Origin: Perkinsus chesapeaki ATCC PRA-425
Lineage: Eukaryota > Protista > Perkinsozoa
Reading direction: 5' to 3'
Length of the DNA stretch: 64,000 nucleotides
Assembly: GCA_013115145.1 (NCBI GenBank)
Contig: JAAPAO010000068.1
Location: 1-64,000, forward strand
The notes beneath the pieces were generated by a model. That model was not told the DNA's origin. It saw only the letters and a list, made by a program, of their open reading frames with translations, and searched no databases. The position numbers were made by a program, and so were the translations under genes. This document shows positions 17,525-63,620 of this stretch, piece by piece (the stretch's first letter is position 1; every line of letters starts with the position of its first letter).

Positions 17525-18559
17525 CTAAATGTGAAACACAGGACAGCTTTGATCTTCAAGGGCGTTGCGCGAATCCTGCTTAGTGCGGTGCTTGATATCC
17601 AAAAGTAATGATGTCGACAAGCTGGGAATCTGCCTCATCACCGAATAGTCACGGTAGTTGTATTCGCGATGCTTCTCATCAGCACTATTAATCGGTGCTC
17701 TCCCATCTACCGGAAAAGGGTAAACACTTGAAAACGGATGCGCAGCCAGAATACCGTAATTCTTGGCTGGCCAGTTGTCGCTTTCCACCGTACCGATTGC
17801 TGAAGATGTATCCTCCTGAGAACTACCATCACCATTAGAGGCACTAGCCAAAGCATCCACGACCGCGCGATTAGCCAAAGAAGCAGCTTCGATAAAGGCA
17901 GAGTCAAGTGGCAGCTTACCATACCCAGACTCATTGGTATGCGGAGGCGACTGTAGCCAGCCAATGTGTGATGTACGGGGGGCATAGCTTTCAGTACCAT
18001 GGTAATACTCAGGGAGCCGTCGACTCCCTTCGGCGAGAAGCTGGTTAATAACCTGCATTCCAGCGTCAGAGGAGCTTAGTGGAGAAGCCGATGCCCATTT
18101 GTATGCCAGAAGACTATCACATATGGCTTCTTTAATGCTCACATCAGAGCGGCCACCGGAAGACCGGCGTTTTTGTGGACTGTTACCAAGTCTCTTTTTC
18201 CTCATCTTCCGTTGGGCTTGATCAGCTTCTCCGATAGCAACAGCAATTTCACCAAGCCCGATCGCCTCTGCGATCTGATGTAGTTGCGGTACAGTTGCGA
18301 AGCGTATCTGAAAGACATACAGATATTATTCCAGACGAACCGCCGCCGTATATACCCTTACGGGTGCGATCTTATTAGCAACGTCTCGAAGGTGAGGAAG
18401 AGCTTGTAGTTTGCGAGTGATCTCCCGTCTGAGCACATCTCGACCATTATTGCCGAGACTAGTCTTGCGAGATTGCGGGAAGGCCTCCGTCTCTCGCGTG
18501 CCAGAATGCGGATCCGGTGACCCAAAAAACTGCTGGCATGTTGCGGAGGCGAAATCCAT
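17525..18559 (-). CDS. Helical-domain family member A (putative DNA-binding regulator)
   Basis: SLGNNGRDVLRREITRKLQALPHLRDVANKIAP | intron 18361-18308 | IRFATVPQLHQIAEAIGL, followed by basic RKMRKKR and an S/T-rich tail. Confidence 0.7.
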
Positions 18560-19193
18560 AATGTAACCTGCCTGAGTTGAGAAAATCCCGCAGAGAAAGC
18601 AACTAAAGCGTCTCTAATAATTGAGGTGGAAACCTGATAGAGGTAAAGAGTTAAGACGATGACTAGGCCAGCCGGAGCCGTCTCCGGGCTGTGGGAGGGG
18701 ATGAGTATCATACTCAGGTCCTGTCTCCATATCCAATACCCAATATTTCTGTACGTAAATAATAGAGACTATGATCCCTTATGATGATCTGAGCACTATA
18801 AAAGCCAGCTGGGAACCGGCAACAAGCCCGACAACGACGAGCAATGCAGTTCGCCGTAGTAGAATATGCCGTTGAGAAATGGCATACAATATTCGCCGAT
18901 CGCCGATATCGGTCACACTGGACAAAAGGGTGCCAGATGATACTATTAAGGTGGTTAACGTCGTATGGTAGTAGCCTAATGTGTGGACTTGAACGTATTT
19001 ATATTCCGGAATGGTAGTAGTAGCACAGAAGAAGGATTATCGACACCAGCTTCCGCAACAACAGAAAATGATTGCATAAATAATGATGACCGTAGCCAAA
19101 AGCATATCCAAGGAACCGCCGACAAGCCTAAGTAGTTAAAATGTTACTGTTTGAGGGCGGTGGAATTACAATAATGTCAGAGTGTGCACCAAC

Positions 19194-20117
19194 TCAAAAG
19201 AATTCTACGGCAGGTCCCACAAAAGCACGTGCGCAGTAGGAGAGAAGTCTGAGCTCCTCATTATCAGCGCAGGGATAAATAGGTGCAGAGAGTTCAACAA
19301 CACCGTCACAAGTTGAGACCGACTGAGTGCTTTGGTTGTTGTTGTTCTGCTGTTGGCCAGAAGTAAGGGTCCTTAAACCGATAATATCTTGTTCAGAGAT
19401 GCCATTAGAACTTGAAGCTCTGCTTGTAATGTCCAAAAGACACAAGTCAGTTAGAGTGCAACCAGGTATACTGAAAGCCTCGTGCCCTTCCACAAGCCGG
19501 CAAGGACTCCCCAACTCGTAGCCACCAGTTGAATAAGCCACTGTCCCATAATCGGTACTAAACGTATCCGGGGAGGATTGTATGGTAGAAAAGTTAGAAC
19601 AGGTTATATAGCCTGTAGAGCCTGTTTGGGGCGTAACACCGCCGCGATTATTAATAAGAGTAGCATCAGCTGCTGCTGAATTCCTAATGGGACTGCTCCA
19701 AACACCGTTCTGAAGAGAGACATGCGATGTAGTCATCCATTGTTGAAGCATGTTACTTACTTGTTTGAGAGTAGACGAGAAGGCCTTAGCACTATGGACG
19801 AAGTTGTTCAATCCTGCAATGGACGCCATTTGGACCAGCTCCGGAACTGTCGCCTCTCGAATCTGACAACAAAGTAGACAAAATAACAACAAAATGTCTT
19901 TCTTCTGGCTGCTGCTGCTCACCCTAGCAATCTTCTTGCATTCCTTTCGCACGTGAGAGTCGTTCTTCATAACCTTCGCCAACATGGTGCGCAGCATGCG
20001 TCTGCCCACTACACCAAGAGACACTTTCGTGAACTGGGGCAAGGATGGCAATGAAGTATGGCAATTCGGTGTGGTATCGTGGGCACCAGGGGCAGGAGGA
20101 GACGGAAATGGTAACAT
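19194..20117 (-). CDS. Helical-domain family member B
   Basis: SLGVVGRRMLRTMLAKVMKNDSHVRKECKKIAR | 60-nt intron 19922-19863 (read through in the ORF track) | IREATVPELVQMASIAGL. Confidence 0.7.
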   Translation of the reverse strand: MLPFPSPPAPGAHDTTPNCHTSLPSLPQFTKVSLGVVGRRMLRTMLAKVMKNDSHVRKECKKIARVSSSSQKKDILLLFCLLCCQIREATVPELVQMASIAGLNNFVHSAKAFSSTLKQVSNMLQQWMTTSHVSLQNGVWSSPIRNSAAADATLINNRGGVTPQTGSTGYITCSNFSTIQSSPDTFSTDYGTVAYSTGGYELGSPCRLVEGHEAFSIPGCTLTDLCLLDITSRASSSNGISEQDIIGLRTLTSGQQQNNNNQSTQSVSTCDGVVELSAPIYPCADNEELRLLSYCARAFVGPAVEFF

Positions 20118-20942
20118 TTCAACACAGGAAAAGCCTGACGGTTATTAAAGTTATCCGGTACCGCCGTCGAAAACAACTCAACAATGGCCGAAGCTACTAT
20201 ACTGCTAAAAAAAGTCAATAGTCTAAGGCAACGGACTTAAGATACGAGTAGAATGCACCGTTACCTCATAGAACACCAACAACGTCTTGTGCTACCCCAC
20301 AAAAAGATAGCAGTAGTTTCCAGTAATGCAGAAAAACGCCTCGCTGCGAGGCCGAAAGTAGTCCCCCGCTAAGTAAGTCCAATAGTGAGCTTCCTCCTTA
20401 CTCGTCAATGAGTAGAGGCGAACGATGATAATGAAACAGTATATCTGGCATAGTTTATTTTTACTACGAGACGCCAGCATACTTCTATACCGAGTTGATC
20501 CTCTTTATTCTCAATCTCATCTCCCTACACATACGATTCAAGTACCGGCCGTTTATATTCTCGCCATCTTGGCAAAAAAGATGTAACAATAATAATAATG
20601 GTGATAAGCAATTGTACTTAAGCAAAGGGGCAAATAAACATAAGTATAAAACGAGACTATTGAAATCCCATAAGGTAAACGTAAGGCATTAAGTCCAAAG
20701 TGTTCAGTAAGTTATAGCCCCTAATGCAAGAGACGTCAGAGAATTGGTAAATTGCTCCAATATAATCTTAGTGAGAAGGTAGAATCAACAGCTGTACATG
20801 TAGTATTAAAGATCTTTACGACCACCGAACAACATAGAGCTTGCCGCCGCCATGTTAACATGGCGGCGGCACCACTTCCATCATTATTATCATAGCAATT
20901 ACCATCTAGGGTGATCGCAAGTAGTAAGAGTCGTAGAATCGC

Positions 20943-22046
20943 TCAATCTCGCATAGGGAATATGCCACCAAGTGAGCACCAAGTACTGCTGCCAGCCGTG
21001 GATAATGATGATGAGGTGAAAGGGTTGCTTCTAACCGGACAGGGCGCCAACGAATCACCTAAATAATTATTAGACGGCGGCGGCGGCGGCGGTGGCGTTG
21101 AAGATGATGATACTGCTGGAGCATCTCGGCAAGTCCCGTTTTGATGAGATTGATTATAAATTAAAGGGTTGTCAAAGATGTTGAGCTCGGCTGTTTCGTA
21201 GTTATCATCGTCAGTAGGCTTGCAGCCGTTACAGGCTCCAGACAGCGAAGAAGAGCTCTGTACACCAGACTCCCACGAGGCTTCAGAGGGGTCCGTTATA
21301 GCAGCTCCCAAGTCACCGATACCAGATTCCGTCGGCTTATCTTTACTAGTGGCAGCGTCAAGTAGTTTCAGATCGGGAAGTGGACGATGAAGATGTGCAG
21401 TTAGGAAGAACGAGCGGATGTCCTCTTGGCCAGGCTGAAAGCAACGCAGAGTTATACCTTCTCAGACACTGTTTCTTTCTTACTGGTGATGCGTCTCTTG
21501 CGACTCGAAGGGTATCTCCTTCATCATGAACGTTCTCCCAAAGCTTCTCTCTATCCAACTCAATCGTAGGATCCATTTGTCTTATAGCGTCTTCAGCTAC
21601 CTCGCGCTCGCCAACGATCTCGCACATTCGCAGCAACTGCTTAACTGTTGCTGATTTCACCTGAACAGAGCTCAACTCCGCTCAACTATCGACTTAACTG
21701 ATGCACCCACCGTTGAGACTTGGCGGCACCTTTCGCGAAGCTCTGGCTTCTCCAGCAGGGCTTTTGCTATTGCAGACCGAACCAGTCTTCGACCGTTATT
21801 GCCCAAACGCAATGCCTTCTCGCCGAGCATAGTCTTCGTACGCGGCTTTTTAGCCGAACAGTTTCTCTTCTTGAGTGAGCTCCCAGTTGAAAGGGTGTCA
21901 TCGAGAGCCCATGTTGTACAGGACGAGGGTTTGAGGTCTTCGACGCTCGGTAGCTCTTCTAGCTTAAAACACGGTGGATCAAAAAGAGAGCCAAGATCGG
22001 CCAATGATGAATTTGTTGGAGAGTTTTGACGAAGATAAAGGGACAT
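20943..22046 (-). CDS. Helical-domain family member C
   Basis: RLGNNGRRLVRSAIAKALLEKPELRERCRQVST | intron 21710-21661 | VKSATVKQLLRMCEIVG. A second gtaag intron joins it to the 20943 ORF, which has a Pro/Ser-rich tail. Confidence 0.7.
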
Positions 22047-23186
22047 TGTGTTCAGTGTTGCCCAAACCTAAGTCAGAAAGAGTGGAGCAACAACAACACG
22101 CCCAACACAATACTGTTAAAGGAAGATAACGTTCTTAAGTGAACGAAGATGACGAAACAAAGGTATAAGTGAATAGTCAGGACGTAGCAACATTGCCACC
22201 AAGGCCGCAATGATTACCGGCGAAATCCAACACTTTGCATTCCACCGGCAATTGTGCAATTCAACTGCAGCTGCGATGTCGTCTACAATTGTGCCTTTGC
22301 TGCACTACGCCCAAACTGCATATTATTAAGTTATTGTACAATAATGGTAGAGGGGCTCATTAACAACGACGATGGCCGCGAGTGGCCAGAATCGTAAAGT
22401 AGCGGCGGCCGCAGTAGTAGCAATACCGTAATTACGCCACTCATCATCACCAACCAATTTAACGCTCATAATGTCGATGGTCAACCAGAGAGAGCGTTTT
22501 GTAGGAATTAACGGTTCACAGATTTTCATGATGACAAGCCACCGCTAAAAAGCATGAAGAGATAATAAGAGTAAATAGCACGCAGACCTGTATCATTGGC
22601 ATACCAAACCCGAGGTTATACGGAAAGAGAAAATAGTATCACACTTGATCTGCCAAATAATAACTGAGGCGGCCCCCGAATAGTCGAGACCGTGGTGGTG
22701 GTGGTTCTCGATAGCCGATTATTCCATATCGGCAATCGTAATGCCAGTAGCAGCGAGAGTGAAGGTAGTAGTGGGGGGGGGCATGAAGATGGTAGTAGTC
22801 CGTCCTAGCGGTCCTTAACCATTGAAGCAGATATCATTCCGAGTGAAAAGTATTACCGAACATATGTGTTGTAACAGCATCTATAGGCCATTTTGATGAC
22901 ACTGTACATGCGCTGCACTTAAGAGTCGCAAACGATTAAAACGAAATTATACATGTTGATGATAACCGAGATAGTGAAAGGGTAATGATAGTACCCCAAG
23001 TAGGCTTTGATAATAGTAGGATTACCGTCTCATACGATATAAATCGAAATGCACCCCAAAAGCGTATAGTACACTAACAACCAACAGAGGAAGGGGACAG
23101 CGCTCACCATACATATCTGCACGTGCGGGAAGACCACTGATGCAGCAGCATCAACAGCAACAGCAGCTCTTCCTAGTAGTATCGAG

Positions 23187-23840
23187 CTAAAAGTTTTGAG
23201 GCGGTCTCGATATATCATCAGCCAGCAGCTCCAAGAAGCTCTTATCTGAAGACTGGTGCTCAAGCCACAGGGGAAAGGATGGTGTTGCGGTAGGTAGTCC
23301 CATGCTGGTAGTAGTTGAAGAGTCATTGAAAGACGAGGTTGATATAGCGGCGTTGGAGGTGGCCGAATGTGCTCCTGTATTAGAGGATGCTGTTGGCGAA
23401 CGTTCCACAAAAGCCGAGGTACTGGTCGGTGTTGAGATACGCAGACGGGAGCTATGCATCGCCTGAGACGCTGCGTTCTCTTGGGAAATAAGAATAGCTC
23501 GATCGAGAGTCCCGGTGATGACGCACATCTCGAGCAGCTGAGACTTTGTGGCTTTCTTTATCTGAATACAAGACACAAATAACTCGACAAAATGCGCCTA
23601 CCTGTCCCCATATAGGAGACAGCCTCAAGAAAGGACAATCCACACAAACCAAGATTGATACCATATTCGCGGTGGTCTATTAACTTGCATCCCGAGTAGT
23701 ATTACATCTGGAGCAACCGATTTGCAGACGGCCCTCAGTTCCGGGTTAGCGCGCAGGGCTCTCGATATCTCCTTTCGCACTTTTTGACGCCCGGTGTTTC
23801 CTAAAGGTAGTCGAGGGTTAACAGGATAAGGCGAAACCAT
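23187..23840 (-). CDS. Helical-domain family member D
   Basis: PLGNTGRQKVRKEISRALRANPELRAVCKSVAPD | intron 23705-23562 | IKKATKSQLLEMCVITG, followed by an S/T-rich tail. The start is uncertain. Confidence 0.65.
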
Positions 23841-24401
23841 TAGCCGATAATAATAAGCCTGACAAGGTCCCCTTATAATAGCAGCAAGCATCAACCTAAG
23901 ATACTCCCGCGAAATAACCACCCCCACCGACTAAGAATTCCTATTGGCATTCTTTATGGCAAAACAAGCAACGACATGAGTCATGTCACCATAATGTCGA
24001 TAATGATATTATAAAGGGCGTCACGTGAGCAGCGTCTGCATACCCTAAAGGATAACGTGAAGTCGAGACGCAACTTCCCTGGTGCTCGCGTACAATTTCG
24101 AGAAAGCGCGCGCCATTATAATCGATTATATTCTTAGACTCGCGTTCAGCTCCTGATGATCATATTAACGAAATGCTGCTTACACTGGCTTCCTGTGCTC
24201 TTAGATATCTTGAACGCGTCGAAGCGTAACCCGGGATACTCATACCGATCTCTCCGTCAGAAAATACGCTCTAGGAGGTGTTTTATCTTCAGCTCCTATT
24301 CATCCATACACCAGGCTTTTGCCTTTGCATATCATATTGGTACGTACTAACCGGAATAATGGCAGTCTGTAGAGCGTTGAACCATTTTTGGATAGTAGCA
24401 C

Positions 24402-27839: not shown

Positions 27840-29571
27840 ACTCTACCAACGTATCATACAAAAGTTGTTGTGTTGATCTCTTACCTTCCGACTCGGAAGT
27901 TCCGAGTGACGTCCCGACACCGGAATTGGGGAAGCATGGAGGTCAGGCATACATGAAATGTCGCTCCTGCGAGCAGAGAGCTGACGGGCGACGCCGCGTC
28001 CCAGCTACCACTACTGTTGAGGAACGGAGCACAGATGTTCTTTGATTGCCATTCAATTCATTGAATAAGTTCAAAGGACAACTGCGCGCACGTGACCGAC
28101 TTAAAAGGCGCGCCATTATTGGTAAGGATTCCCTACCAAGGGATTCCCTACTAGACAACACGAACCTCTCCTGTGTTGTTGTCAGTCTGAAATGAGTTTT
28201 CTATTATTAGCTTGTTTTTACCCTATATAGGATGTTATCAACAACGCAAGAATTAGCCTTACCGTCGCTACGCGGTTGCAGGCGGCTGGTGCCAATTGTG
28301 AGGGCTGCTAGTTGCGGGCTCACTCGGTTACCGATGGTGCACCCAACACCTCGATTTTTCTCAACAGCTGATCTTGAAGACACCACGGAGAGACGTCGCA
28401 AGCGAATGATGGGGATACGCTCTAAAGAGGAGATGGCCGAGAGCGCGCGGCGTTACACTGAAGTGCGTCGGATCAGGGTATTTCCCGGTGCGCAAGAGCA
28501 CATCTGTTCAGAATACCGGAGTGGACCCTCATCTGAGCGATGACGAAGATGAGCTCGATGGTAAAACCTTTACGGCTAATCAGCCCGATGAACTGGCCGA
28601 ACTTTGCCTTCGAAAGTAGTTTGTTGCATCGTGAATAGCCTTTGTGAATACGATGTTGGTGTCAGATACCGAACTTTCGAACCAGAGAGGATTACAGACC
28701 GGAAGCTTAAAGTTCTGGTGAGATGGGGATGATATGGCTCTGAGGGTTAGAGCCTCTGACCTGGGCTAATCAAGCCCTATAGCACACTCGTAGGCGTCAT
28801 CTACCGTTTGTAGCCTACGAATGGTAGCCTACGCACCCGCCAGGTGCATCTTCATCGCAGCAGAGGTGTACCTGCGCGCAACAGCAACTCATAAAACCAC
28901 TTGACCTCGGTAGGATGTCAAATAACCGCGTTTATCAGATGTCAACTGGTAAACGCGCTATTTGTCTAGGTGACGGCGTCACCTTGAAGCCACAGAGTGT
29001 CGGTTATATCGCATCACCGTCACAAAACTTGGTACCGGGAGGGAGCTACGGTAGCTACCCCATGCACTGTATCACTGGGTAATGCAATCACGCTGATTGA
29101 GTTACTTCGTGATGTACTTTTTGTGGCACAAACGTTGTGCTTAGTACGCATGCTCAGTTCCACTGAGTCTGCTCCACCGAGTCAGCGGAGCAGATAACGC
29201 ACAATCATTCGTTCGTAATAACGAACGTAACCCTGTATTTTGTTACAGTATGGTACAATACGACGAATTTCCTCGGACGAACCTCAACATTTATTACGTA
29301 TAGCATCACGCGCAACTCTTCGGCTGTAAAACGGAAGCGTATCGCTGCGAGACTCTCGCCATTAGTGTCGCTTCGCATGTCTTGACAATCAATTGCTGTT
29401 TCTCTCTCTCCGCACTGATAGAGGCTTCTTTGAGCTAAGCCCGTAGCTTCATAGGAATTCCTGTAGTTCATTGCAGTGTAATGCTCACATGCGTGGCTAC
29501 TGAGTTGTGCTGTACGTAGAACACTCTTCTTCTACAGTGCGTTGGTGTTTGAAAAACACCAAAAACACTGT

Positions 29572-29787
29572 TTTTTTGGGCAAGTTGATTAAAACTGAAT
29601 AATTCGCGTCGGCTGTAACCTTTAGGGATATCGCTACAAGACAAGGGGAATCGATTAGTATAACTATCATGGCAAAACTCTCAGCCGTTTCATAGTGAGG
29701 GCGAGCGAGAAGAAAAATGACCGTATTCAGGCTGAATAATCGCTGGCTAACGCGAAATATTCAGTTTCAATCAGCTTGCCCAACAAA
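29572..29787. mobile_element. MITE-like element of about 215 bp with about 34-bp terminal inverted repeats
   Basis: ttgggcaagttgattaaaactgaataattcgcgt (29576-29609) pairs with acgcgaaatattcagtttcaatcagcttgcccaa (29750-29783) with 3 mismatches. No ORF is present and no TSD was identified. Confidence 0.6.
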
Positions 29788-29892
29788 GGCGAACGCACTG
29801 TATATCAAAAAATCTTTGACAGCGGCAATATCCAGCGGAAGTGCTACGTCACGTTACATTTTGACGAGAGTAAGTTATGGCAACTGTAGCGA

Positions 29893-30570
29893 TTAGACTC
29901 GCTCGCTCGCAGACCGGGAGTCCGGTGCCTCAATTCGTAGCCTACGGCTCGAATCGCGGAGAATTATGAGGATTGTAATCGAAGTAGCAGGAGACGCCAG
30001 GGATGTCGCAGTACCGCTGTTGATGTGAACTGTCGCCACTGAGGACCCGTCAGCGGCGTGATACTTATCGTACATCTGACTTAATAGCAAAGAACGCTCG
30101 GGATCCGCCGATATAGAACTACGGTCACTCGAGCTTGGACTGCTCATAGCAAGGACGACGAGTTAATAGCAGAGCATTAACGAGAAACCCTACAGTAGTA
30201 CAGTGATAAACAATGGTAGTAAGCTCCTGCGGAAACGCGTATGACCATAGATCTCTCACTATGTCGGGAAATAGATCGGGCAATCGATGTAGACTTATTT
30301 GTCACCAAATATCATCTTGCTCATTTAACCTTAATCACAACAGCTGTGACACCTTTTAGGCGCCGCCGTGCCGCATCGATGTTCGTTTATGGCAACGAAC
30401 ACAAAGCGCGGAGGGAGTTGAAATTAGCACAAGTTGTTCATAGCTCTCGAGGGCGAATCGATCAACACACTGCGCGTGTTCACGCGTGCACACTTTCCTC
30501 CGGGCATGGCCGTTGTGGGGCGAACAGAGCATTCTAACTGCGGGGGCCATGGCTGGCAGGCACTGGCTGC
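29893..30570 (-). CDS. Hypothetical spliced protein
   Basis: Open segments MGSAASACQPWPPQLEC... and MSSPSSSDRSS...ERV* are separated by intron-like gaps. Confidence 0.25.
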
Positions 30571-32336
30571 GGACCCCATCTACAGGCCAAAACTGCAGGC
30601 CCTTCCATTGAATCTCGCAGCGGCTGGAGACTCCAACTCAAAGTTGGTAACCTGGTCACAAATTGCTCTAATCGAAATGCGAGTGCATGAGTCGCTTCCC
30701 GAGACCGATCAACTTGCGAGTGCAGCGAGTGTCTCGGGGTGTTTGGAGCAACTTGCTCCCGGTTTACGGTCTCTGTGTGTGCTACATATGTATTACGCAC
30801 ACATACGGTACGTATGTTATAGTGAATCATCCGCTCATATGACTCGCTTTATTTCCTTACAAGCAGCAAATTGAATGGATCCCCCATTTAGAAGGGTTCT
30901 TTGTCTGTTATCGTGAAGTTTAGCGGGTAGCTATGCCCGACGTCTCAGCTGGCGAGGTGTTACTCATTGAGTAACACTCAAGGCTCCTGATTCGCACATG
31001 ACTTCCCGTTCTTTTATTCGCTCCCTCCCTCGTGGTTTAGCCATGTTGTACGCGCATTTCTTGTGGCGGCGCCCGCTCGCCAGGGCCACTGTGGCAAATC
31101 CGCTACTATACTTTGTCGTTGCTCGCATTTATGTCGATCCTCGGGTCGAGCATCTCAATGGTGATGTCTGTCCCTTAACTTGGCTTTGGGGACTCCCCAA
31201 TGGGGAGTATGTAGGCCCCCGATGATCTTGTATCTCGCGCTGCGCTTTCCGTTCCCAAGCGTCACGCTTGAAGCGTGCCAGAGGTGGTCCTGGTAGGTGG
31301 CATGATTGGGGTCCCAAGCCCGCGATAGTGGCGCTTTTTCACATACAATCTGACTGTTATGCTTTCTAATGGTTGAGGCTAGTGAAAAGAAGTCCTTCGG
31401 TCACTCCCGAATCATCATAATAATTCTGACAGAATTCCCCAATTTGAGTTCAGAGATCCGGCTACAGATGCTACTGGCATGATCAACTTGATCCTCTTCG
31501 CAGAGCCCGTGCGAATCGAAACTTGACATATAGAAATTTGTTTTCAGATACGCAAGCTCCCCGAGTTTAGCGGTGGAGACGGAACGGAAGATATCTCCTC
31601 TACACAGTTGAGAGCTGTTCGCGACAAATGGAGTTCCCTGCGACGCGACGAAGTTGATAGAGTCACATACGACAATTGCGCATCTTATGAGCCTTGAACC
31701 GAAAAACTACTTTGCACCGGCATTAGCCTCAGTCAATTTGCCTCGCTCGTTCCTTGCGTTTGGCGCTACTTCGTGCGTTGTTCCGACTGGGATTTTCTGG
31801 CAGTATGAATAACGAGAGTTCCCCCGCTAATGGTATGGCGCCGCCGCTAGATTCATGTGGTGCAGCACGGTTTACGGCTTCGCCACCAGCTCCAGGGTCA
31901 TTGCCTACTGGCTCAAGTAGGACGGGAGTCTTAATATTTTATGTGTATTCAATATAATTGCGGAGTGAGCAGAGCGAGCGGGGCGTATACTCTCACTTTG
32001 CTGGCACTTTGTGCGTGCGTGCGAATAAATCACCCAGCTCGATGATCTAGAGGGGTTATGATCACAACCTTTGCACCAATCGATAGCTCTTACTCTGGGG
32101 ATACTAGGAAGAATACGGAAAGTGGGTTCTGATTGTATCAGAAGGTCAGCGGGACAAAAAATATTTCTTCTGCAGAAAAATGACAGGCCTGGGGATCGAA
32201 CTTGCTAGATGCTTTGAGAATTCAACGGCCAATTACGGACGACCCCACGCATCTCTTCTATCAGTCCTGAGCTTCTGCAATTTTTACAGGCACTAGTACC
32301 GCCGGGCAGCAGCAGTTCAAGTTGTCCACCGCAGCA

Positions 32337-51576: not shown

Positions 51577-52659
51577 TTACTCGAGGCTCTTCGATAGGTA
51601 GTAAGTTGTTATCAGGCAGGGCCTACCGTTCCTTCTTCTGGAACAGCCTAGATCTTCAAGCTCGTCATCGGAGACGTCGTCGTAGTCGTAGGAATTGCCA
51701 AAATAGGGGTCATCCTCTATGCAGTAGACAACGTCCTTATGGCCACAGGCAAACTGCCTCCCTCTCCCTCCACTAATGTGCGAATCGCTCCTACGCAAAT
51801 ACCAAGTGTTCCCTACAGACCGCAGCATGTCATCGCACAGTGTCAACCCTCTGGGTCCACGGTTTTGGTACTTGGTTACCGCGACGCGGGTGGATTCATC
51901 CAGAAAATGAACTTCCGACACAGAGTTGAGCTCAGTCGACGCGAAGGAGGTCTCGACTGCACGAAAACTCAGAGGCTCGTGGCGACTCCTCAATTTATAG
52001 GTATACAGGCTGAGCTCGTCCTTACAGTGCGACACCACCTGGGCAGACAGAGGATCTTCGTCGTTCACCATTAGGCAGCTCAATCTGCCCGCGGGTTCAG
52101 CGGGTTGTATCAGTTTGGCTTGCCCCCATTCGGAGTTGACGAGACGATCAATACAGAAGAGATGGCCGGGATCGAAGAGCACAAAGACGAAGTTGTCAGT
52201 GCAGGCCAGACTTGTCTTGGTTTCCCTGACGTGGTCCCTGGAGCCTGGCAGACCGGACACCTCCAGTGTGACGCCAGTGGATTCGGTTCCAGTATTCAAG
52301 TCGTAGTATATCAGCTTGCGATTGACATCAGAGAGGGCGAAGAGGAGGCACTTGGCTCTGTCATAGTAGTAGACGGCTTTACCTTTAAAACCAGGTTGTA
52401 ATACCATCACCTCCTCACCTCTCTCAAGAGGCTTTCTAATATATACACCAGTAGGAGTAGGATAGACACCAAGAAGCTCTTCATTCATAACAAATATAAA
52501 TGATGGTGATGGACTAACCAGAATCTCCTCTCGTGGACAGACTAGAGCAAGCTCCCTCTTTGCGAGGTGTGGGGCGAATTCGTTGGTCATATCAGGCAGA
52601 GGGCCATCCCCAGCAGCCTTCTCAAGCACCACCTCAAAAAGCCGCAAGTCTAGCACCAT
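51577..52659 (-). CDS. Tandem-array family member 1 (intronless; ancestral start broken by TAG)
   Basis: 360-aa ORF sharing CPREEILVSPSPSFIFVMNEELLGVYPTPTG with its neighbours. Confidence 0.85.
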   Translation of the reverse strand: MVLDLRLFEVVLEKAAGDGPLPDMTNEFAPHLAKRELALVCPREEILVSPSPSFIFVMNEELLGVYPTPTGVYIRKPLERGEEVMVLQPGFKGKAVYYYDRAKCLLFALSDVNRKLIYYDLNTGTESTGVTLEVSGLPGSRDHVRETKTSLACTDNFVFVLFDPGHLFCIDRLVNSEWGQAKLIQPAEPAGRLSCLMVNDEDPLSAQVVSHCKDELSLYTYKLRSRHEPLSFRAVETSFASTELNSVSEVHFLDESTRVAVTKYQNRGPRGLTLCDDMLRSVGNTWYLRRSDSHISGGRGRQFACGHKDVVYCIEDDPYFGNSYDYDDVSDDELEDLGCSRRRNGRPCLITTYYLSKSLE

Positions 52660-52896
52660 AGCATGGGCAGGCTACTTCATGAGGTACGGTAAGAAAGACA
52701 ATCCTATATGCAGCTTACAATGATTACATGCGCGGTGCTTCTAGAAACACTCAGATCTTGTTATTATAACAGAAAACACAACACTGAGTAAAGCTAGTAA
52801 AAAAGTGCTTCAGCGTGCTGTCGGTAGTCAATGGTCCTTTATATATTAAAACGTTCAGCTTGAGGGAGAATTGGGTTGGCAATCTTACAGTAGATA

Positions 52897-54222
52897 TCAG
52901 GGATCCATATACATGTAATAAGCTGTAATTTTACATGATGCAGAACACCGACGCCTTTTGAAGGCGCGCCCCGCTGTATGCCACGTAGGCCTATATGCCC
53001 TTGGGAAAGTTAGCCGACTACTAGTTGATCTCACGTAAGACACAACACTGCTGCTGTCTTCGTTTAGCTCTAGTTCTTCATCTTCATCATCTTCATCTTC
53101 ATCATCTTCATCTTCATCTTCCTCGTCATCATCTTCACTGTCTTCATCGTCATCGCTGTGTTCATCGGAGTCCATATCATATTCATTATAGCCTTCGTTA
53201 TAGACGTAGGAGGCTCTGTTGGGGCGGGCGGAGTCACTGGGCAGTGACGCACTATATAGAATATCTTTTCCACCGTAGACCATCTGACGACACTTGCTGT
53301 AGTAAGTATCATACAGCTTGGCTTTGGGACCGAAATGCTTCGTCGGAGGGTGGTACACATGCATATAGGCATCGATTTCGACTTCGACTCGCCTGAACGT
53401 CCGAGTCCTCAAAGCCAGCATATCATCGCCGATAGGATAAACGTCGCAGACGTGTTCGGAACCAGAGTACCCCGGAGGGGCTAGCTGCTCATTTGACACT
53501 TCTCGAAAGCAGAGAGGCTCCATTCGGTGCCTCATCGAAATCTTCAGCAGCCTCCATGTATTAGCGCGCGCGCTGCCAACCACCATGACGCTCAACGGGT
53601 CCTTAGAATCAGCTACTAGGGAGCAGCCTGTGAGCGGGGTGGACTCGGAAGACCATATCAACTTGGCTTGTGCAGATTCACCTATGGCTTCACGGTCGAT
53701 ACAGAAAAGTCTATTGTTGCCAAGCAAGATAAAAACGAAAACTTTGGTGAGGAGCATGCTTGTGGGTTCTGGACGGGATGCATGGTGTTCAATTAAGCCG
53801 TGAACTTTGATGGTAGATTTGGATTTAGGTCCGACTGATAAATCGTACTGGTTGAGCTTCCGCATATCATCATGTAGAATAAACAAGTGGTGGTTCTTGC
53901 TGTCATAATAGTAGACTACTTCACCTTTAAAGCCAGGCTTTAAGACCATAACTTGCTCATCTCCTTTAAGAGGCTTTTTAATATGTAAACCATTACCGGT
54001 AGGATAAACACCAAGAAGCTCTTCATTCATAACAAATACGAATGATGGTGCCGCGCTTGCCAGAATCTCCTCTCGTGGACAGTCCAGTGTGAGTTCCCTC
54101 TTTCCAAGGTGTGGGGCGAACTCGTGAAGCATATCCGGCAGAGGGCCATTCCCAGCAGCCTTTTCGAGCATCTTATTGAACAAGCGCAGCTCTAGTGCCA
54201 TAACATGTGGAGGCAGTCTCAT
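52897..54222 (-). CDS. Tandem-array family member 2 (with acidic tract)
   Basis: 441-aa intronless ORF, N-terminus MRLPPHVMALEL, D/E-rich insert. Confidence 0.9.
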   Translation of the reverse strand: MRLPPHVMALELRLFNKMLEKAAGNGPLPDMLHEFAPHLGKRELTLDCPREEILASAAPSFVFVMNEELLGVYPTGNGLHIKKPLKGDEQVMVLKPGFKGEVVYYYDSKNHHLFILHDDMRKLNQYDLSVGPKSKSTIKVHGLIEHHASRPEPTSMLLTKVFVFILLGNNRLFCIDREAIGESAQAKLIWSSESTPLTGCSLVADSKDPLSVMVVGSARANTWRLLKISMRHRMEPLCFREVSNEQLAPPGYSGSEHVCDVYPIGDDMLALRTRTFRRVEVEIDAYMHVYHPPTKHFGPKAKLYDTYYSKCRQMVYGGKDILYSASLPSDSARPNRASYVYNEGYNEYDMDSDEHSDDDEDSEDDDEEDEDEDDEDEDDEDEELELNEDSSSVVSYVRSTSSRLTFPRAYRPTWHTAGRAFKRRRCSASCKITAYYMYMDP

Positions 54223-54544
54223 TGTAAGGGGTTAAGATTTGTCTATTGGCTGAAATGAGAAGCTTGGAAATGCATCCGGGACATCGCGAAGAATATCAGA
54301 CATAACGTGAAGTCTACCAGTCGCTAACATCCGCTACTAGTGATAGCTGAGCACTATGTGTGACTAAAGCACTGTCCGCTCCTAGCCAGGTCGACCGCTT
54401 GCATAGGTTCCACCAACTCAACAAGCTATTAAGCATAATGAAAGTCATAAAAGTACAGCCATTGAATTGTAATGAACCCATACAATACCCCTTAAGGCTC
54501 AGGGTTAGGCTACAGTAGGATGATAACGTGCATCTTCAAAGCCA

Positions 54545-55654
54545 CTAGTCCTTGTACACGTAATACGTTGTTATCTTGCACGACGAGGCCTGTCGCTGCC
54601 TTTTGTTAGGGCAACCATTGTTGCCAGCGAATCCTGGGTAATCACGCGCTCGAGTCAACTGAGCAGCGGTATCTCCTACAGCGAGAGAATAAATAATATC
54701 GTTTCCGCCGCAGACCACTTGCTTAGTCTTGTTGTAGTAGCCGTCAAATGCCCCGGAGGCGGGACCCAAGACTTTAAGGGAGGAATCGATGAAGTGAAGA
54801 TTAAGCCCTACACGGGTACCACCGAGAGATAGCATTGTCGCCACGATTAAGTCACTGGACAGGGGAAAGATGTGAAGGACTCTGTGGGCGACGTCCACGT
54901 CGGTAGCCGGCGCCATTTCGTCGCTCACCGCACGGAAATAAAGGGGATCTTTTCGGTACTTCAACTCGAAGCGTATTCGCGTCCACCTGTAGTCCGAAGC
55001 GAAGCCCAGTAAAGTAACACCGAGGGCATCACTTCCATGGAGTGACAAGCAGCACTCGCTAAGACCATCGCCTTCGGCGCACCAAATACTTCTGGCCTGC
55101 GCGTAGCTACCTACATCTGCACGATCGACACAGAACAACCGATCGGACGTATCCAGTATGAAAAAGAATTCGTCAGTGCAGATCATCTGAGGCTTCCGTC
55201 CAGTCAACCCGTCGCAGTCTTTATGGAGACCATGGACATCAATGCTGGAAATGGCCTCAGGTTCAGCTGATAAGTCGTACTGGTGGAGCTTCCGCATATC
55301 ATCATGTAGAATAAACAAGTGGTTGTTCTTGCTGTCATAATAGTAGACTGCTTCACCTTTAAAGCCAGGCTTTAAGACCATAACTTGCTCAACTCCTTTA
55401 AAAGGCTTTTTAATATGTAAACCATTACCGGTAGGATAAACACCAAGAAGCTCTTCATTCATAACAAATACGAATGATGGTGATGGACTAACTAGAATCT
55501 CCTCTCGTGGACAGTCTAGTGTGAGTTCCCTCTTTCCGAGGTGTGGGGCGAACTCGTGAAGCATATCCGGCGGAGGGCCATTCCCAGCAGCCTTTTCGAG
55601 CATCTTGTGGAATAGGCGTAGCTCTAGTGCCATAACATGTGGAGGCAGTCTCAT
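54545..55654 (-). CDS. Tandem-array family member 3
   Basis: 369-aa intronless ORF whose first ~130 aa are near-identical to member 2. Confidence 0.9.
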   Translation of the reverse strand: MRLPPHVMALELRLFHKMLEKAAGNGPPPDMLHEFAPHLGKRELTLDCPREEILVSPSPSFVFVMNEELLGVYPTGNGLHIKKPFKGVEQVMVLKPGFKGEAVYYYDSKNNHLFILHDDMRKLHQYDLSAEPEAISSIDVHGLHKDCDGLTGRKPQMICTDEFFFILDTSDRLFCVDRADVGSYAQARSIWCAEGDGLSECCLSLHGSDALGVTLLGFASDYRWTRIRFELKYRKDPLYFRAVSDEMAPATDVDVAHRVLHIFPLSSDLIVATMLSLGGTRVGLNLHFIDSSLKVLGPASGAFDGYYNKTKQVVCGGNDIIYSLAVGDTAAQLTRARDYPGFAGNNGCPNKRQRQASSCKITTYYVYKD

Positions 55655-55935
55655 TATTCAGATGATAGGAGTAGCCGACTACAACCGGAACTTCACGAAT
55701 AAGCAACGAACAATTCTAAACGATTTACATTTCCTGAAGGTTCGGAGGCGACTGTTCAAGAAATCTCTTAATGCTGTCAAACCCGTCGCTGAAGGCAAAG
55801 AAAAATCTATTGCTAGCCGTGGAAACTCGGGGGGTCATTTGACACCGATGGCGCCTTTGCACAGCGCTAGTAACTCAACAGGGATTGATGTAGAAAAATA
55901 TTGGTACCGTAACTTATCGCTTCCTAATTCAAATA

Positions 55936-57039
55936 TTATCTATAAACGTAGCAAGTGGCGACTCGACACCCTGTGGAGAATTCTATTCGATCAAGTCGAG
56001 ACTCGGCAGTCTCAGCAGCATCAGGATCGAAGTCATCCGGTATATAGCACTCAGCCAAAGTGTTGTCCTCTCTGCGAAGGTAGATCAAATCTCCCGGGCC
56101 CAGTACGATCTGCATGCCCTGTACCTTGATATAGTCACTGGTGGTGAGGCTGAGGGCCTTTCCCATAGGGCGCAGAGACCGACTATAAAGTGTGAGACAG
56201 CAGTTGATTTCTCCAGGTCGTCGGCTGACCACTCCGTAGAACAGGCCGTCTACATCGATAACCAATATTATATCCGCGGCTCTACCGTTATTTACCAAGA
56301 CCAAATTGAAGTCGTCAACAGCATAGTCAAAATACAAAGGACACTTCCGCCTTTTCAACTTCAAAGTGTGGACAGAGTTCCGGTTGTAGCCAAGCATGAC
56401 CACTTTTATCGCTTCGGGATCATTGGGAACCGACAGCAACATCCGCCTGGTGCCATTTTCCGAGTTGTAAACGAGCTTGGCTTGAGCAGTCTCACGGATG
56501 TCTGAGCGATCGATACAGAAGAGATGGCCCGATGAAAAGAGGATAAAGACGAACTCGTCGGTGAGCTTCATGTCCAAGGGAGATTTGCTGGACGTCGAGC
56601 CCCGTGGTAATCCGAGGACTTCACTCGAAACACCGTTGCCTGCTAGCCCATCTGCGAGGTTATACTGTATCAGCTTGCGGTTGCCTTCGCAGAGGATATA
56701 TAGCTGGCGCTTCTCGACGTTATAGTAGTGAACGGACATGTCTTTAAAAGCAGGTTGTAATACCATCACCTCCTCACCTCTCTCAAGAGGCTTTCTAATA
56801 TATACACCAGTAGGAGTAGGATAAACACCAAGAAGCTCTTCATTCATAACAAATATAAATGATGGTGATGGACTAACCAGAATCTCCTCTCGTGGACAGT
56901 CTAGTGTGCAGTCCCGAGTTCCCAAGAACTCCGTATAAGGCTCGCCGACTTCCGGTAGCGCTCCGAGCCTGCCCGACTTCTCCAAAAGAACCTCGAACAC
57001 CCGATGCTCCAACGCCATTACGTGAGCGGGCGTCTTCAT
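55936..57039 (-). CDS. Tandem-array family member 4
   Basis: Intronless ORF with homologous start MKTPAHVMALE. Confidence 0.9.
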   Translation of the reverse strand: MKTPAHVMALEHRVFEVLLEKSGRLGALPEVGEPYTEFLGTRDCTLDCPREEILVSPSPSFIFVMNEELLGVYPTPTGVYIRKPLERGEEVMVLQPAFKDMSVHYYNVEKRQLYILCEGNRKLIQYNLADGLAGNGVSSEVLGLPRGSTSSKSPLDMKLTDEFVFILFSSGHLFCIDRSDIRETAQAKLVYNSENGTRRMLLSVPNDPEAIKVVMLGYNRNSVHTLKLKRRKCPLYFDYAVDDFNLVLVNNGRAADIILVIDVDGLFYGVVSRRPGEINCCLTLYSRSLRPMGKALSLTTSDYIKVQGMQIVLGPGDLIYLRREDNTLAECYIPDDFDPDAAETAESRLDRIEFSTGCRVATCYVYR

Positions 57040-58203
57040 AATCAATAACGCTCGCAAACTAAAAAACCAAGTGTAGCGTAGCTCTGTTTACACTGACTAT
57101 GGCGAGAGCACGATCGCCTTCATGTCAGAGACGCTACCACAAAAATTGGCAGCATTCCAGAAAACTGGCATCTCTCGACTCGATTGTTCAATAGCAAAGC
57201 TTTGAGGCTCAAATCAAGCAGATCTCCCAATGAACGACGACAGGTAGCTAATCCGCATCTGTGGTCGGTAGACTAGCCTCACCGATCCGCCAAGGAAACA
57301 CAATAGCTGCTCATCTGGGGATGAAACTATTAATAAGAGACCATGCAGGAGGGAGAGTACTGCACAAGCCCGATTGACGGGGAAGTTGCTTTGCAAACCT
57401 GTCGGGACTGTGAGCGATCTTGTTGATCCCAGCAACCCTCACCTCAGTATCAGGCCTTGTATGATAATACGAAACCAAATCCGGAATTACTCCGGCGGAG
57501 TAATCCATCACTGTTATCAATTAAGACAGAATAAAGCTATCGGAAGATCTGTTGCTCGCTTCAGGCCACTGTGTCCGATTCCTCATCAATACTTTCGAGA
57601 GGTAAAAACGCAGTACCTCCGTGGCAACATAGAATTATCGCTACTACTAGAAGATTGAATATTTCTTTGGCCGACTACAAGTCTCGCAATTCTACGGTTT
57701 CATCGTCAAGTGTGTCATATTGTTCACTCACCACCGCTCAAGTACGACAGCACAGAAGACTACAACGTCCTTAGTCTTGCGAGGACTTCGCTAGTGCGTG
57801 TTGTAGTTCCTTCTTTGTTAGCTGCGCTAGCTGGATGTCAAACGTAAGCAAACAAGTATACGGGAGCCGGAAAGTAAAAGAATTACAAGGGGACCAGATA
57901 CAGTGGAGAGGTAGAGGCAGCTAATTGGGTTGCTGACCGCCTCACGGCGCGCGTGGCATGGTAGGGGTGCGCGGCTGAGTAGCGCCTATACCGGCTCCCC
58001 AGGCTTCTTATCATATTTTATCTGTGCCACTCAGACTAGGTAGTAGTAATGCGATGACGTTATCAACCAATACAGAAACATTAACACTATAATGCTAGTA
58101 CAAATAGAATGACTTTAATCGATCGTATGGCCATTGAAAATACAACGCACCAGCAACATGGAAAGCTGCCAATTAAAAAAGTAACAAATATCTACAACCG
58201 TCC

Positions 58204-59358
58204 TCACGACACCATATAGGGATAATAGACGCTGATTCGCTTCGATTGTTCCCTACCAACATAGTCTCGCACCGTTTCCACCATATCTACTGTGTCGTGG
58301 TCGCTAACATAACTCCCCTCGCTGTCAGAGCTCCACTCGTCCTCAGGCATAAATGACGGCGAGAAGGAGCTGTCATCTCGGAGGATATAAATGACGCCGT
58401 TCGGACCAGATACTATTTGCATGTCCCTCGCATCCACGTACTCCGGTGATAGGATGACCGGATCCCCGATGAACCGGAACATCCTATCCCGCAGCTCAAG
58501 CCAGCACTCCCGAGGCCTACCGTCCACGTTGTGATAGGTGGCTAATGCATAGATATTATCGTCAATAGGGTAGACCATACAGAGCCGAGCGCCGAAGGGG
58601 TCATCATGGTAGAGGTCGTGGGCCTGGTGTGGACGCTCCTTGAAATAGAGAGGGGCCCGGCGACTTTTCATCCTCAAACGCACCACAGTGACACCGGTAC
58701 GATTTCTCAACAGGACACGGAGGCCCTTCGGATACGTCGGGCTCACCAACAGCTGCTCGGCCCGGAATCTGGCACGCCCATTGGACCATATGAGATGGGC
58801 CTGCACACTCCTCCGGGGATGAGAGCGATCGATGCAGAATACATGGCGAAAACCGAACAGAGTGAAAATGAAGGGGCCGCTGCAGACCATCTGGAGGGCA
58901 CTCCGCCTGTAGTCGGAGGCCCTGGGCAAGCCGAGCACCTCCATGATCGGATGTGGCGGTCTATCAGGTTGAAGCTTGTAGTGGATCAATCCACGGTTAC
59001 GATTGCACAGCACCACCAGGCATTTGCGCTTGCTGTCATAGTAGTAGACGGCATTACCTTTAAAACCAGGTTGTAATACCATAACCTCCTCACCTCTCTC
59101 AAGAGGCTTTCTAATATATACACCAGTAGGAGTAGGATAAACACCAAGAAGCTCTTCATCCATAACAAATATAAATGATGGTGATGGACTAACCAGAATC
59201 TCCTCTCGTGGACAGTCTAGTGTGCAGTCCCGAATTCCCAAGAACTCCGTATAAGGCTCGCCGACCAGCTCTGTCACCGCACTGCCTCCACCGCGTGACT
59301 CCAATACGGCCTCGAACAGCCGCAGATCCAGCGCCAACGCATGAGACGGCAATATCAT
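58204..59358 (-). CDS. Tandem-array family member 5
   Basis: 384-aa intronless ORF, MILPSHALALDL. Confidence 0.9.
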   Translation of the reverse strand: MILPSHALALDLRLFEAVLESRGGGSAVTELVGEPYTEFLGIRDCTLDCPREEILVSPSPSFIFVMDEELLGVYPTPTGVYIRKPLERGEEVMVLQPGFKGNAVYYYDSKRKCLVVLCNRNRGLIHYKLQPDRPPHPIMEVLGLPRASDYRRSALQMVCSGPFIFTLFGFRHVFCIDRSHPRRSVQAHLIWSNGRARFRAEQLLVSPTYPKGLRVLLRNRTGVTVVRLRMKSRRAPLYFKERPHQAHDLYHDDPFGARLCMVYPIDDNIYALATYHNVDGRPRECWLELRDRMFRFIGDPVILSPEYVDARDMQIVSGPNGVIYILRDDSSFSPSFMPEDEWSSDSEGSYVSDHDTVDMVETVRDYVGREQSKRISVYYPYMVS

Positions 59359-59852
59359 TTATAAGCCCCTCCTACACAGTAGCTCATCGGTATTAGTAGT
59401 GCGCCATACAACAATCCCGAGAAATTATGCCCCGATGCCCCGATGATGACAATGAAATGATTGTTCGGAAGGAGGTAGAGCAGAAAGCTGTACGTGATTA
59501 AGCTCTAATAGTTGCATCTGACGCTCCTCCGACTGCCATCGCATCATACGACAATTTATTCCAAAACGAACGCGACTTCCCTGAGATTACTACCACACAC
59601 AGTTCTGCAAGGAGCATTGCTGCCTTATGGCCTCCAATCAAAGGAGTTTCTCTTGCCATAATCCATCTGCCTCTAATGAGATCCAAGTCGAGTATAAAGA
59701 ATTACCCGACATCTGTGGCCACGGTCGGCTATATACACGAGCCGGTCCGGCAAACTCCTAGGCTCTTCGCCAGCTCGCCTACAATAAGTACGCGAGCAAC
59801 CGAAGAGCATTTCACAATAACTCAAGGGAAGATGAGGGAAACTGAAATAACA

Positions 59853-60962
59853 TCAATACGTGTGATATACCGTCAACCGCATTGGATCCTCGAGAGGAAG
59901 CATTTCTGAAACAGACGTGTCGATAGAGCTCACCGACTCGTCATCGCCAGCCTCGATGAACCGCCGCTGTACTCGAAAGGACGTATCCCTCCGAAGCACA
60001 TAGACCACATCCCCAAAACCGCAAATCACTTCCATATCGGAGACTTCCCTATGATCTTCAGCCACCTTCGTTGCGAAGCCGATCCTCCTAGAACTGCTAT
60101 CCACCAGTTGAAGCTCACAACTTCTCCTATTAGAGTAGCGGGATGCTGTACGATAAACCATTCCTAGTATGCCATACTCCAGCGGCACCACAGTCATCAA
60201 CTTGTACGATTGTCCGGCTCCAGGCCATGGTACTTCCGACAGCTCCTCAAAGCAGCGCTTGCCCCCTTTATCGACGAGACGGAGGTCGACTATATTGATA
60301 CCGAAGTACCCTAGAACAAGCACTCGGACACGGCGGGGATCGGAGGGGTTGAGGACCAAACGTTCGCAACGATCAGGGTTGTAGCAACCTCGCCAGCCAC
60401 GATAAGCTTCAACGGTATCATGAACGGTCTGTCGATCGATGTAGAAGAGATCGCCGAGCGGTGTTAAGATGTAGATGAAGTCTGTATTCGCAGCCATATC
60501 TAGTTTACGGCTCCGACACAGCCAAGGATCCGGCATGCCGGACACCTCGGAGACTTGCCCAGGTCGATCAGTTGCTTGTATATCGTATATTATCAACTCA
60601 CGGTTATCCTCACATAAAACAAATAGTCTATATTCAATAGTATGATAATAATAGATACCTTTACCTTCAAATCCAGGCTGTAATACAACACCCTCGTCAC
60701 CCTGTACCAGAGGCTTTCTTATATTCAAACCGGTAGGGGTAGGGTAGACCCCATAGAGCTCATCGTTCATAATAAATATAAAAACCGGTGGTGGTGTCAA
60801 AAGCAGCGTGGCACTGACGTAGCTCAATGCGAGTTCCCTCCTTCTCAGTACATTACAGAACTCCTTAAAAACTCCCGACAGGACGCCGTCTCGGCCGCGC
60901 CTCTGCATCAGCTCCATGAAGACGCTTACTTCCAGCGCTAAGACGTGACCAGGAGATTTCAT
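59853..60962 (-). CDS. Tandem-array family member 6
   Basis: Intronless ORF with homologous start MKSPGHVLALE. Confidence 0.9.
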   Translation of the reverse strand: MKSPGHVLALEVSVFMELMQRRGRDGVLSGVFKEFCNVLRRRELALSYVSATLLLTPPPVFIFIMNDELYGVYPTPTGLNIRKPLVQGDEGVVLQPGFEGKGIYYYHTIEYRLFVLCEDNRELIIYDIQATDRPGQVSEVSGMPDPWLCRSRKLDMAANTDFIYILTPLGDLFYIDRQTVHDTVEAYRGWRGCYNPDRCERLVLNPSDPRRVRVLVLGYFGINIVDLRLVDKGGKRCFEELSEVPWPGAGQSYKLMTVVPLEYGILGMVYRTASRYSNRRSCELQLVDSSSRRIGFATKVAEDHREVSDMEVICGFGDVVYVLRRDTSFRVQRRFIEAGDDESVSSIDTSVSEMLPLEDPMRLTVYHTY

Positions 60963-61060
60963 AAAGGGAAACTGACGGCAAGCGTAAGTCACCCTCCAGC
61001 CACCTTCACCTTAACTAAACAGCTACAGGCTACAAAGCCTAGGAAACTCTCATGACACTT

Positions 61061-62215: not shown

Positions 62216-62497
62216 GACTAAAAATCAACTCAGAGCTGCAGCACCCTCATAGAAGAATCAAACCCATAGTACCGACCAGAAACCAGATTTGGCATCTCCG
62301 GTTGAGCCATCACCTTATCCGACACTTCCATTATAGACCGACTGCCAATCCGTCGGTGGCAGGAAATTGACAGGCTTCACCAGACACCCTGGGCATCCTC
62401 ATCCGCCCCGAAATCCGAATAAGGCACACATTAGGTCAGCTCCGATAACGAATTGAACCAACTCAAATCCTAACTAGTTCAAAAGTACTGAGACATG

Positions 62498-63620
62498 CTA
62501 TTGAGAGGGACAATACCAGTGCACAGTGTACACGGCGAGCCTCTTAGGATCATCAGGACACACATCGGAGATGATACTATCTGACGATTTTATCCTTGGC
62601 AACTCCTCGTTATAATCTCTCTCGGTAAATTTCGCCTGCTCTTTAAAGGACGTATCCATTCTTACAAAGTAGAGAGTGTCGCCTGGTCCATCCATTATCC
62701 GCATGTGATAGGCTTCCTTACCATCCATCGCCACCTCCGTAGTACAGGAGCCTATCTGACGGAAGCGACTGTCTGCCAGGCGAATGCTGCAGGTGGCTTT
62801 GCTGCTCATTGTCGACTCATCACGTATGATTACGCCAAATACACCAGGCACTATCGGTATTACGGACGTCAGAGGCTTATCTATATCGCCGAACCACCGG
62901 ATTTCGCGGTGCGGGAACACCTCATAGGGCGTGAGTCGTCGCCAACAGCGCTCATCCAGCAGAACATCGATCACGTACATTTCGTGGCGCGCTGCCGTTA
63001 CAACTCTGACCTGATAGGGGTACCTCGTCCCCATTATGAGATGGTCGCAGCGGCCTAAGGTGCCATCGGTGCTCCACCAGAGGAAGGCTTGGCAAGAGTC
63101 TCGAATCCTTCCGCGCACAATATAAAAGAGATGCCCGGTTGAAATGAGAATCGGCAGCCATGTCGAACTTGCGGTTGCAGCACTGTGACACGGTGGGCAT
63201 GCCGGACACCTCTGAGACTTGCCCCGGTCGATCAGTTGCTTGTATATCGTATATTATCAACTTACGGTTATCCTCACATAAAACAAATAGTCTATATTCA
63301 ATAGAATGATAATAATAGATACCTTTACCTCTTGGGCGTAATACAACACCCTCGTCACCCTCTACCAGAGGCTTTCTTATATTCAAACCTGCGGGGGTGG
63401 GGTAGACCCCATAGAGCTCATCGTCTATCATGTACGTGTACGATGGAGCTGGACTGAGAATGAAGTCGTCAAATGATTTCGCTAGAATATGCATTCTCCT
63501 CGTCATACAGGATGAGATATCCTCAAAGATTCCAGATAGGTCACCACAGCGACCACGCCGATTCAGCAGCTCGTCAATCAGGCCCATTTCGAGGGCTAAC
63601 ACATGGGCAGGAGTTCTCAT
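62498..63620 (-). pseudogene. Tandem-array family member 8, frameshifted
   Basis: Split into overlapping ORFs 62952-63620 and 62498-63118. Alignment to member 7 shows a net 17-nt deletion at about 63151. Confidence 0.8.

Follow-up and report, generated by a model that had tools for sequence, protein, structure and literature searches.

What is the small domain shared by four neighbouring genes of Perkinsus chesapeaki ATCC PRA-425, a protist related to an oyster parasite, and what might it do? The genes lie within the first 64,000 nucleotides of contig JAAPAO010000068.1 (assembly GCA_013115145.1), a stretch that we call the window and whose positions are used throughout. A reading of this DNA made from the letters alone (the original prediction) had proposed four head-to-tail paralogues sharing an unannotated helical domain, a family of transcription factors, and a resemblance to the homeodomain-like domain of the apicomplexan protein HDP1. 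The first of these proposals stands: the region consists of four separate, tandemly duplicated genes, each of which encodes a single copy of one domain of 62-65 residues that has no Pfam entry. Taken as a whole, the best explanation in our view is an undescribed four-helix domain, carried by four tandem genes, with a putative role in binding nucleic acid or chromatin, and we give this explanation a probability of roughly 0.5.

Four tandem genes with one shared domain

The genes, named D, C, B and A in the order of transcription, are arranged head to tail on the minus strand from 23858 to 17525, and all four peptides from which the original prediction had started were found on that strand where it had placed them. 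The early-branching myzozoan that it had envisaged as the host is Perkinsus. The spliced gene models and their domains are the following (aa, amino acids).

23187..23858, minus strand: gene D, 169 aa; coding exon 1 at 23706-23840, coding exon 2 at 23187-23561
23475-23816, minus strand: gene D domain, residues 9-74, with one residue extra ahead of the intron
20943..22046, minus strand: gene C, 334 aa; coding segments 21711-22046, 21484-21660 and 20943-21434
21574-21815, minus strand: gene C domain, residues 78-141
19194..20134, minus strand: gene B, 270 aa; coding segments 19923-20117, 19761-19862 and 19194-19709
19773-20027, minus strand: gene B domain, residues ~31-95
17525..18559, minus strand: gene A, 326 aa; coding segments 18362-18559 and 17525-18307
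18224-18466, minus strand: gene A domain, residues 32-94
Residues 99-115 of gene A: basic patch just after the domain

In pairwise BLASTP comparisons of the spliced proteins, the similarity is limited to the domain and, with E values of 2e-7 to 9e-14, is judged at the sequence level to be far beyond chance. Hidden Markov models (HMMs) of the half-domains found exactly four copies within the 64 kb of the window and none elsewhere in it. The domain follows the pattern L-G-x-x-G-R ... L-[KR] ... P-x-L-[RK] ... A-[TS]-x-x-Q-L-L ... G, and in an alignment of 31 rows (A4) it is ~65 residues long, with five columns (L, G, R, A and L) that never vary and two G columns that hardly do. Every full-length copy has a net positive charge (+2 to +9), and a basic tail commonly comes after it.

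Outside the domain, serine, threonine and proline together make up 25-43% of the sequence. This bears out the S/T/P-rich part of the flanks as originally described, but they do have features of their own, as orthologues retain short C-terminal motifs. The basic clusters resembling nuclear localisation signals (NLS) that had been expected in A and C were both located, after the domain in A and before it in C; B and D have none. When the exons were aligned with MAFFT, the end of exon 1 (P-x-L-R-x-x-C-x-x-V-A) was overlaid on the start of exon 2 (V-x-Q-L-x-x-M-C-x-I-x-G), as seen at 18362-18400 versus 18260-18300 and at the equivalent places in C and D. This overlay hints at a weak internal likeness between helix 2 and helix 3, which may be due to chance.

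A shared intron, trans-spliced transcripts and public gene models

In all four genes the domain is split by a GT..AG intron of phase 0 at the same place, between the '...I/V-A/S-x' that closes helix 2 and the '[IV]-[KR]-x-A-T' that opens the next segment. The shared intron of the original prediction is thus present in each gene, and for B and C it is confirmed by RNA. Two RNA-derived contig sets (runs X1 and X2) were compared with 18050-23950, and the introns and spliced-leader (SL) acceptor sites are listed here (nt, nucleotides).

18308-18361, minus strand: domain intron of A, 54 nt
19863-19922, minus strand: domain intron of B, 60 nt, in frame and stop-free
21661-21710, minus strand: domain intron of C, 50 nt
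23562-23705, minus strand: domain intron of D, 144 nt
19710-19760, minus strand: second intron of B, from RNA contigs
21435-21483, minus strand: second intron of C, from RNA contigs
20135-20136, minus strand: SL acceptor AG of B; contig end with SL letters joined to 20134
23859-23860, minus strand: SL acceptor AG of D; loose contig end with SL letters at 23860

RNA contigs join 19862 to 19923 across the domain intron of B and 21660 to 21711 across that of C. Furthermore, two transcript-derived proteins span both introns of their genes without a single deviation, P0008 being identical to residues 45-124 of spliced B and P0003 to residues 73-200 of spliced C. Gene A had zero RNA depth in both runs, and gene D showed a hole in RNA coverage over its intron. 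For these two genes, annotated orthologues from P. olseni and P. marinus (P0001, P0005 and P0052) are spliced in the same way, such that the A and D introns are supported by gene models of other Perkinsus species; the model of gene D is identical in P0005 and P0052, the latter being its P. marinus orthologue.

The loose ends of RNA contigs carry additional letters, ...CCGTAGCCATCTTGGCTCA joined at 23858-23860 in the case of D and ...CTCAAG joined to 20134 in the case of B. These letters match the Perkinsus spliced leader PmaSL1, ACCGTAGCCATCTTGGCTCAAG (PMC3101222). Because PmaSL1 letters mark the 5′ ends of both, B and D are separate trans-spliced mRNAs, with 5′ untranslated regions of ~17 nt. 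Some RNA contigs were chimeric or inverted (19098, 19833, 21661/22069); one had SL letters in plus orientation after 19098, and another had an opposite-strand joint at 21661/22069. They are probably assembly artefacts that arose via the common spliced leader.

The public annotation of the contig agrees with ours for gene C (334 aa, same coordinates) and differs from it for the other genes. It fuses B and A to one product of 592 aa (17525-20117), and its model of gene D (P0033, 23187-23664) begins within the intron, such that the first half of the domain is missing. The fusion is contradicted by the fact that B has its own SL site, by RNA coverage that stops near 18688 with none over A, and by the P. 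olseni orthologue of A, which stands alone. As a result of this fusion and truncation, routine searches miss two domains out of the four, and the present analysis corrects these models. The P. olseni orthologue of D carries the name 'AP-4 complex subunit epsilon-1'. AP-4 or adaptin models were not among the recurrent Pfam matches in a scan that covered the domain segment of this protein only, which leaves the label unsupported rather than refuted.

A compact predicted fold without significant PDB matches

AlphaFold2, run on alignment A4 with the gene C domain as the target, gave a model with a predicted local distance difference test score (pLDDT) of 86.2 and a predicted template-modelling score (pTM) of 0.75, in which helices occupy residues 10-27, 29-38, 46-56 and 59-69. 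The same helices appeared when a distant environmental member was modelled (pLDDT 79). A compact unit of four helices is thus predicted for the domain, with high confidence.

Neither model had a significant match in the PDB, in two Foldseek and two VIA-align searches, and shape searches of AFDB Swiss-Prot and the ESM Atlas returned nothing meaningful; the effector-associated domain EAD7 appeared in the latter at noise level, with TM scores of 0.48/0.53. Matches to AFDB clusters at a probability of >=0.9 were all uncharacterised proteins with myzozoan-looking accessions. From the accession ranges, we take these to be from Perkinsus, chromerids and Cryptosporidium, and weaker matches presumably come from coccidia, Plasmodium and Babesia. 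Helix-turn-helix (HTH) domains of the XRE type recur among the weak neighbours of both models, with scores at noise level. The Perkinsus domain differs from XRE or lambda-repressor-like HTH domains in having no sequence match to them, a link between helices 2 and 3 that is too long for a classical HTH, and a candidate recognition helix that is poorly conserved and, in gene C, acidic. SAP, HeH and LEM Pfam models gave no match at E<=10 to any of the 31 domain segments, including the half with A-T-x-x-Q-L.

An old family in Perkinsus, Cryptosporidium and gregarines

A profile built from staggered exon halves of the window, bridged by a P. olseni orthologue, was searched against 1.84 billion representative sequences and gave 40 matches at E<1e-3, ~35 of which are real. 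The repeat proteins P0002, P0015 and P0019 were spurious, as they matched profile columns encoded by the intron of gene B, and a clean local HMM dropped them. With this HMM, ~35 relatives have a full-length, contiguous domain at ~50-100 bits. A word-indexed search with the P0001 domain returned P0001 only, and one with the open reading frame of B gave no match, as the fused public product of 592 aa exceeds the protein lengths which that search admits. Profile searches of PDB sequences gave no match.

The members with a name come from several loci of three Perkinsus species (P. marinus, P. olseni, P. chesapeaki) and, outside this genus, from Cryptosporidium serpentis, C. felis, C. ryanae, two Gregarina species and Digyalum oweni; the others come from compact, gene-dense eukaryotic contigs of metagenomes. 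None of the profile matches that were given names is from Plasmodium or coccidia, a minority of matches being left unnamed. P0006 has two copies in one protein. Neither an AP2 domain nor any other Pfam domain was found in the 27 full-length members. The C. felis member bears the name 'AT hook', a label that we reject, as no GRP core was found in it. The family is old, and the domain is undescribed and in no domain database.

Evolution of the cluster

P. olseni has retained the order D-C-A on contig JABANP010000027.1, with the domain split alike, and no orthologue of gene B is found at this locus. The cluster is old, D, C and A being syntenic in P. olseni. A chromodomain (+AAA) gene flanks it in P. 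chesapeaki (28334-31664) as well as in P. olseni (L001 1-2280), such that synteny reaches past the four genes.

Between P. chesapeaki and its P. olseni and P. marinus orthologues, the domain is 76-91% identical and the remainder of the proteins 36-57%; the domain is thus far more constrained than its flanks. In a tree of 66 columns, C pairs with D (90/84), the most diverged copy, B, sits on a long branch, and A-D are weakly placed next to a P. chesapeaki paralogue that has two domains. Within the family, the A-D cluster forms an offshoot specific to Perkinsus, and it is older than the split of P. chesapeaki, P. olseni and P. marinus.

The paralogue P0020 has a phase-0 intron seven codons upstream of the A-D site, whereas P0006, its upstream neighbour and the Cryptosporidium gene are intronless. 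An intron conserved across the entire family is thereby ruled out, and since introns elsewhere in the family are placed differently or missing, the A-D position marks the A-D subgroup only.

A second RNA contig of gene C in run X2 (21550-21631, exon 2) has about half the depth and differs from the genome at 12 of 82 nt. Of these changes, ten are synonymous and two alter an amino acid, which indicates purifying selection. The contig may stem from a divergent allele, from strain variation or from a further copy of the gene.

A second cluster of the family lies on P. chesapeaki contig JAAPAO010000174.1 (L003 5121-6960), where a 231-aa one-domain gene is found directly upstream of the two-domain P0006; all three domain copies are intronless. 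Elsewhere in the window, at 51577-63620, about eight intronless open reading frames of 360-441 aa each follow one another in tandem on the minus strand, and none of the four that were scanned has a Pfam match.

Is the domain a homeodomain or an ACDC domain?

The original prediction pointed to HDP1, and there are some likenesses to PfHDP1 (PF3D7_1466200). Both are cases of one small helical domain in a largely disordered myzozoan protein of low conservation, with NLS-like basic patches, and both are candidate lineage-specific regulators. However, PfHDP1 is a single protein of 3078 aa with its domain at the extreme C-terminus, whereas the Perkinsus proteins have 169-334 aa and are clustered. According to the HDP1 paper, Plasmodium and coccidia are the only groups from which its domain is reported, and our family was not found there by sequence. 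The two ranges are complementary, as the family is known by sequence from Perkinsus, Cryptosporidium, gregarines and Digyalum, and one could thus imagine that they represent the same domain. In keeping with this idea, some weak AFDB matches (E ~1, TM 0.6-0.7) are, by their accession ranges, presumably coccidian and Plasmodium proteins, but in these the match is not C-terminal in a very long protein, as would be the case for HDP1. Furthermore, the language-model neighbours of a Cryptosporidium segment with its basic tail include homeodomain clusters at 0.71-0.75, below the tool's threshold of 0.9 for a lead. This lead was dropped, because the gene C domain alone has no homeodomain neighbours.

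More direct comparisons also argue against a homeodomain. Homeodomain, Homeobox_KN, Myb and other HTH models do not recur among Pfam matches of the 31 domain segments at E<=10 or of the 27 full-length proteins. Instead of the three-helix HTH that would superpose on solved homeodomains, the models have four helices and no recognition helix of the WF.N.R type, and homeodomains, though abundant in the PDB, are absent from the Foldseek and VIA-align match lists of both models. We therefore regard an HDP1-type domain as very improbable; the proposed resemblance is not supported by sequence or by predicted fold. These comparisons covered Pfam models and solved structures, and a very remote link to HDP1 would escape them.

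The ACDC domain (PF14733; PDB 8RXA) came into consideration because the weak AFDB neighbours of the model include a Babesia AP2/ERF protein, matched in its C-terminal region. Like the Perkinsus domain, ACDC is a myzozoan-restricted four-helix domain without close fold relatives and with a biochemical function that is unknown. It differs in length (85-150 aa versus ~65 aa here), has a wholly different signature, and belongs to ApiAP2 proteins, whereas none of the 27 full-length members has an AP2 domain. PF14733 did not match any full-length protein or domain segment, hhalign gave a probability of 2% for A4 against the ACDC domain of PfAP2-O5, and the 8RXA fold, an orthogonal four-helix bundle with a kinked helix 3, was in the PDB set that was searched but is absent from the match lists of both models. 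The domain is thus not ACDC.

What might the domain do?

The uniformly basic domain, the NLS-like clusters of A and C and the fast-evolving S/T/P-rich flanks lead us to rank nucleic-acid binding first, and the recurrence of XRE-type HTH domains among the neighbours of both models was counted as leaning in the same direction, weak though these matches are. On sequence and model, we hold at somewhat under even odds that nuclear regulators use this domain to bind nucleic acid or chromatin. In such a mechanism, the conserved basic residues, which the sequence and the helix boundaries place on helices 1 and 2 and in the loop that leads to helix 3, would form the binding face; the domain would anchor the disordered, fast-evolving tails in the nucleus, such that the proteins act as gene-regulatory factors, and the tandem copies may have diverged in their partners or targets. 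Given the basic domain, the disordered flanks and the NLS-like patches, a family of sequence-specific regulators, as originally proposed, is plausible. A few observations weigh against binding of nucleic acid. In gene C, the helix after the conserved glycine turn (helix 4) is acidic, and its conservation across A-D is poor, which would be odd for a recognition helix; there is no GRP motif behind the 'AT hook' name in C. felis; and the homeodomain neighbours in the language-model comparison are limited to the Cryptosporidium segment that includes the basic tail and are not seen with the gene C domain.

The main rival to nucleic-acid binding is that the domain serves as a protein-protein interaction or adaptor module, similar to ACDC of ApiAP2 proteins or to death folds, which recruits partners and does not itself touch nucleic acid. 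The acidic helix 4 of gene C would suit such a role, P0006 has two copies as adaptor modules often have, and both the EAD7 shape match in the ESM Atlas and the Babesia AP2/ERF neighbour in AFDB point this way. Yet none of these structural matches rises above noise, a death fold has six helices as compared to four here, ACDC itself is excluded, and the uniformly positive domain and tail are better suited to nucleic acid, such that we consider an adaptor possible but rather unlikely. The proteins might also have another role altogether, be it in RNA binding or outside the nucleus with acidic phospholipids or a cytoskeletal partner, as fast-evolving, lineage-specific factors that are unrelated to transcription. 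Basic helical domains do bind RNA and membranes as well, B and D are devoid of NLS-like clusters, the flanks change rapidly, and the P. olseni locus lacks B. On the other hand, no signal peptide or transmembrane segment is apparent in the translations, as judged by eye only, and a small conserved domain with a basic tail and disordered flanks is typical of nuclear factors. A role of this kind thus seems improbable to us, and binding of nucleic acid or chromatin remains the preferred reading.

A further step would be to regard the domain as a new, myzozoan-specific class of sequence-specific DNA-binding proteins with one or a few copies in Cryptosporidium and gregarines and an expanded, tandemly clustered set in Perkinsus; Plasmodium and coccidia would have lost it or let it diverge beyond recognition. 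We put this forward tentatively and with some doubt.

Implications for Perkinsus and its relatives

The protein family is undescribed, though domains of this kind, small, basic and helical and set in putative regulators that are disordered, form no new category. Its conservation extends from Perkinsus to gregarines and Cryptosporidium, neither a Pfam entry nor a solved relative exists for it, and its charge and architecture are as expected for a nucleic-acid-binding module. Apart from ApiAP2, strikingly few transcription factors can be recognised in apicomplexans and their relatives, and each new domain of nuclear factors in this group, such as ACDC and HDP1, has opened experiments. Perkinsus and Cryptosporidium are both genetically tractable and the domain is small and confidently modelled, such that its function is directly testable. 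Should the domain turn out to define a new DNA-binding class, this would add a further class of transcription factors to a group that is known for very few.

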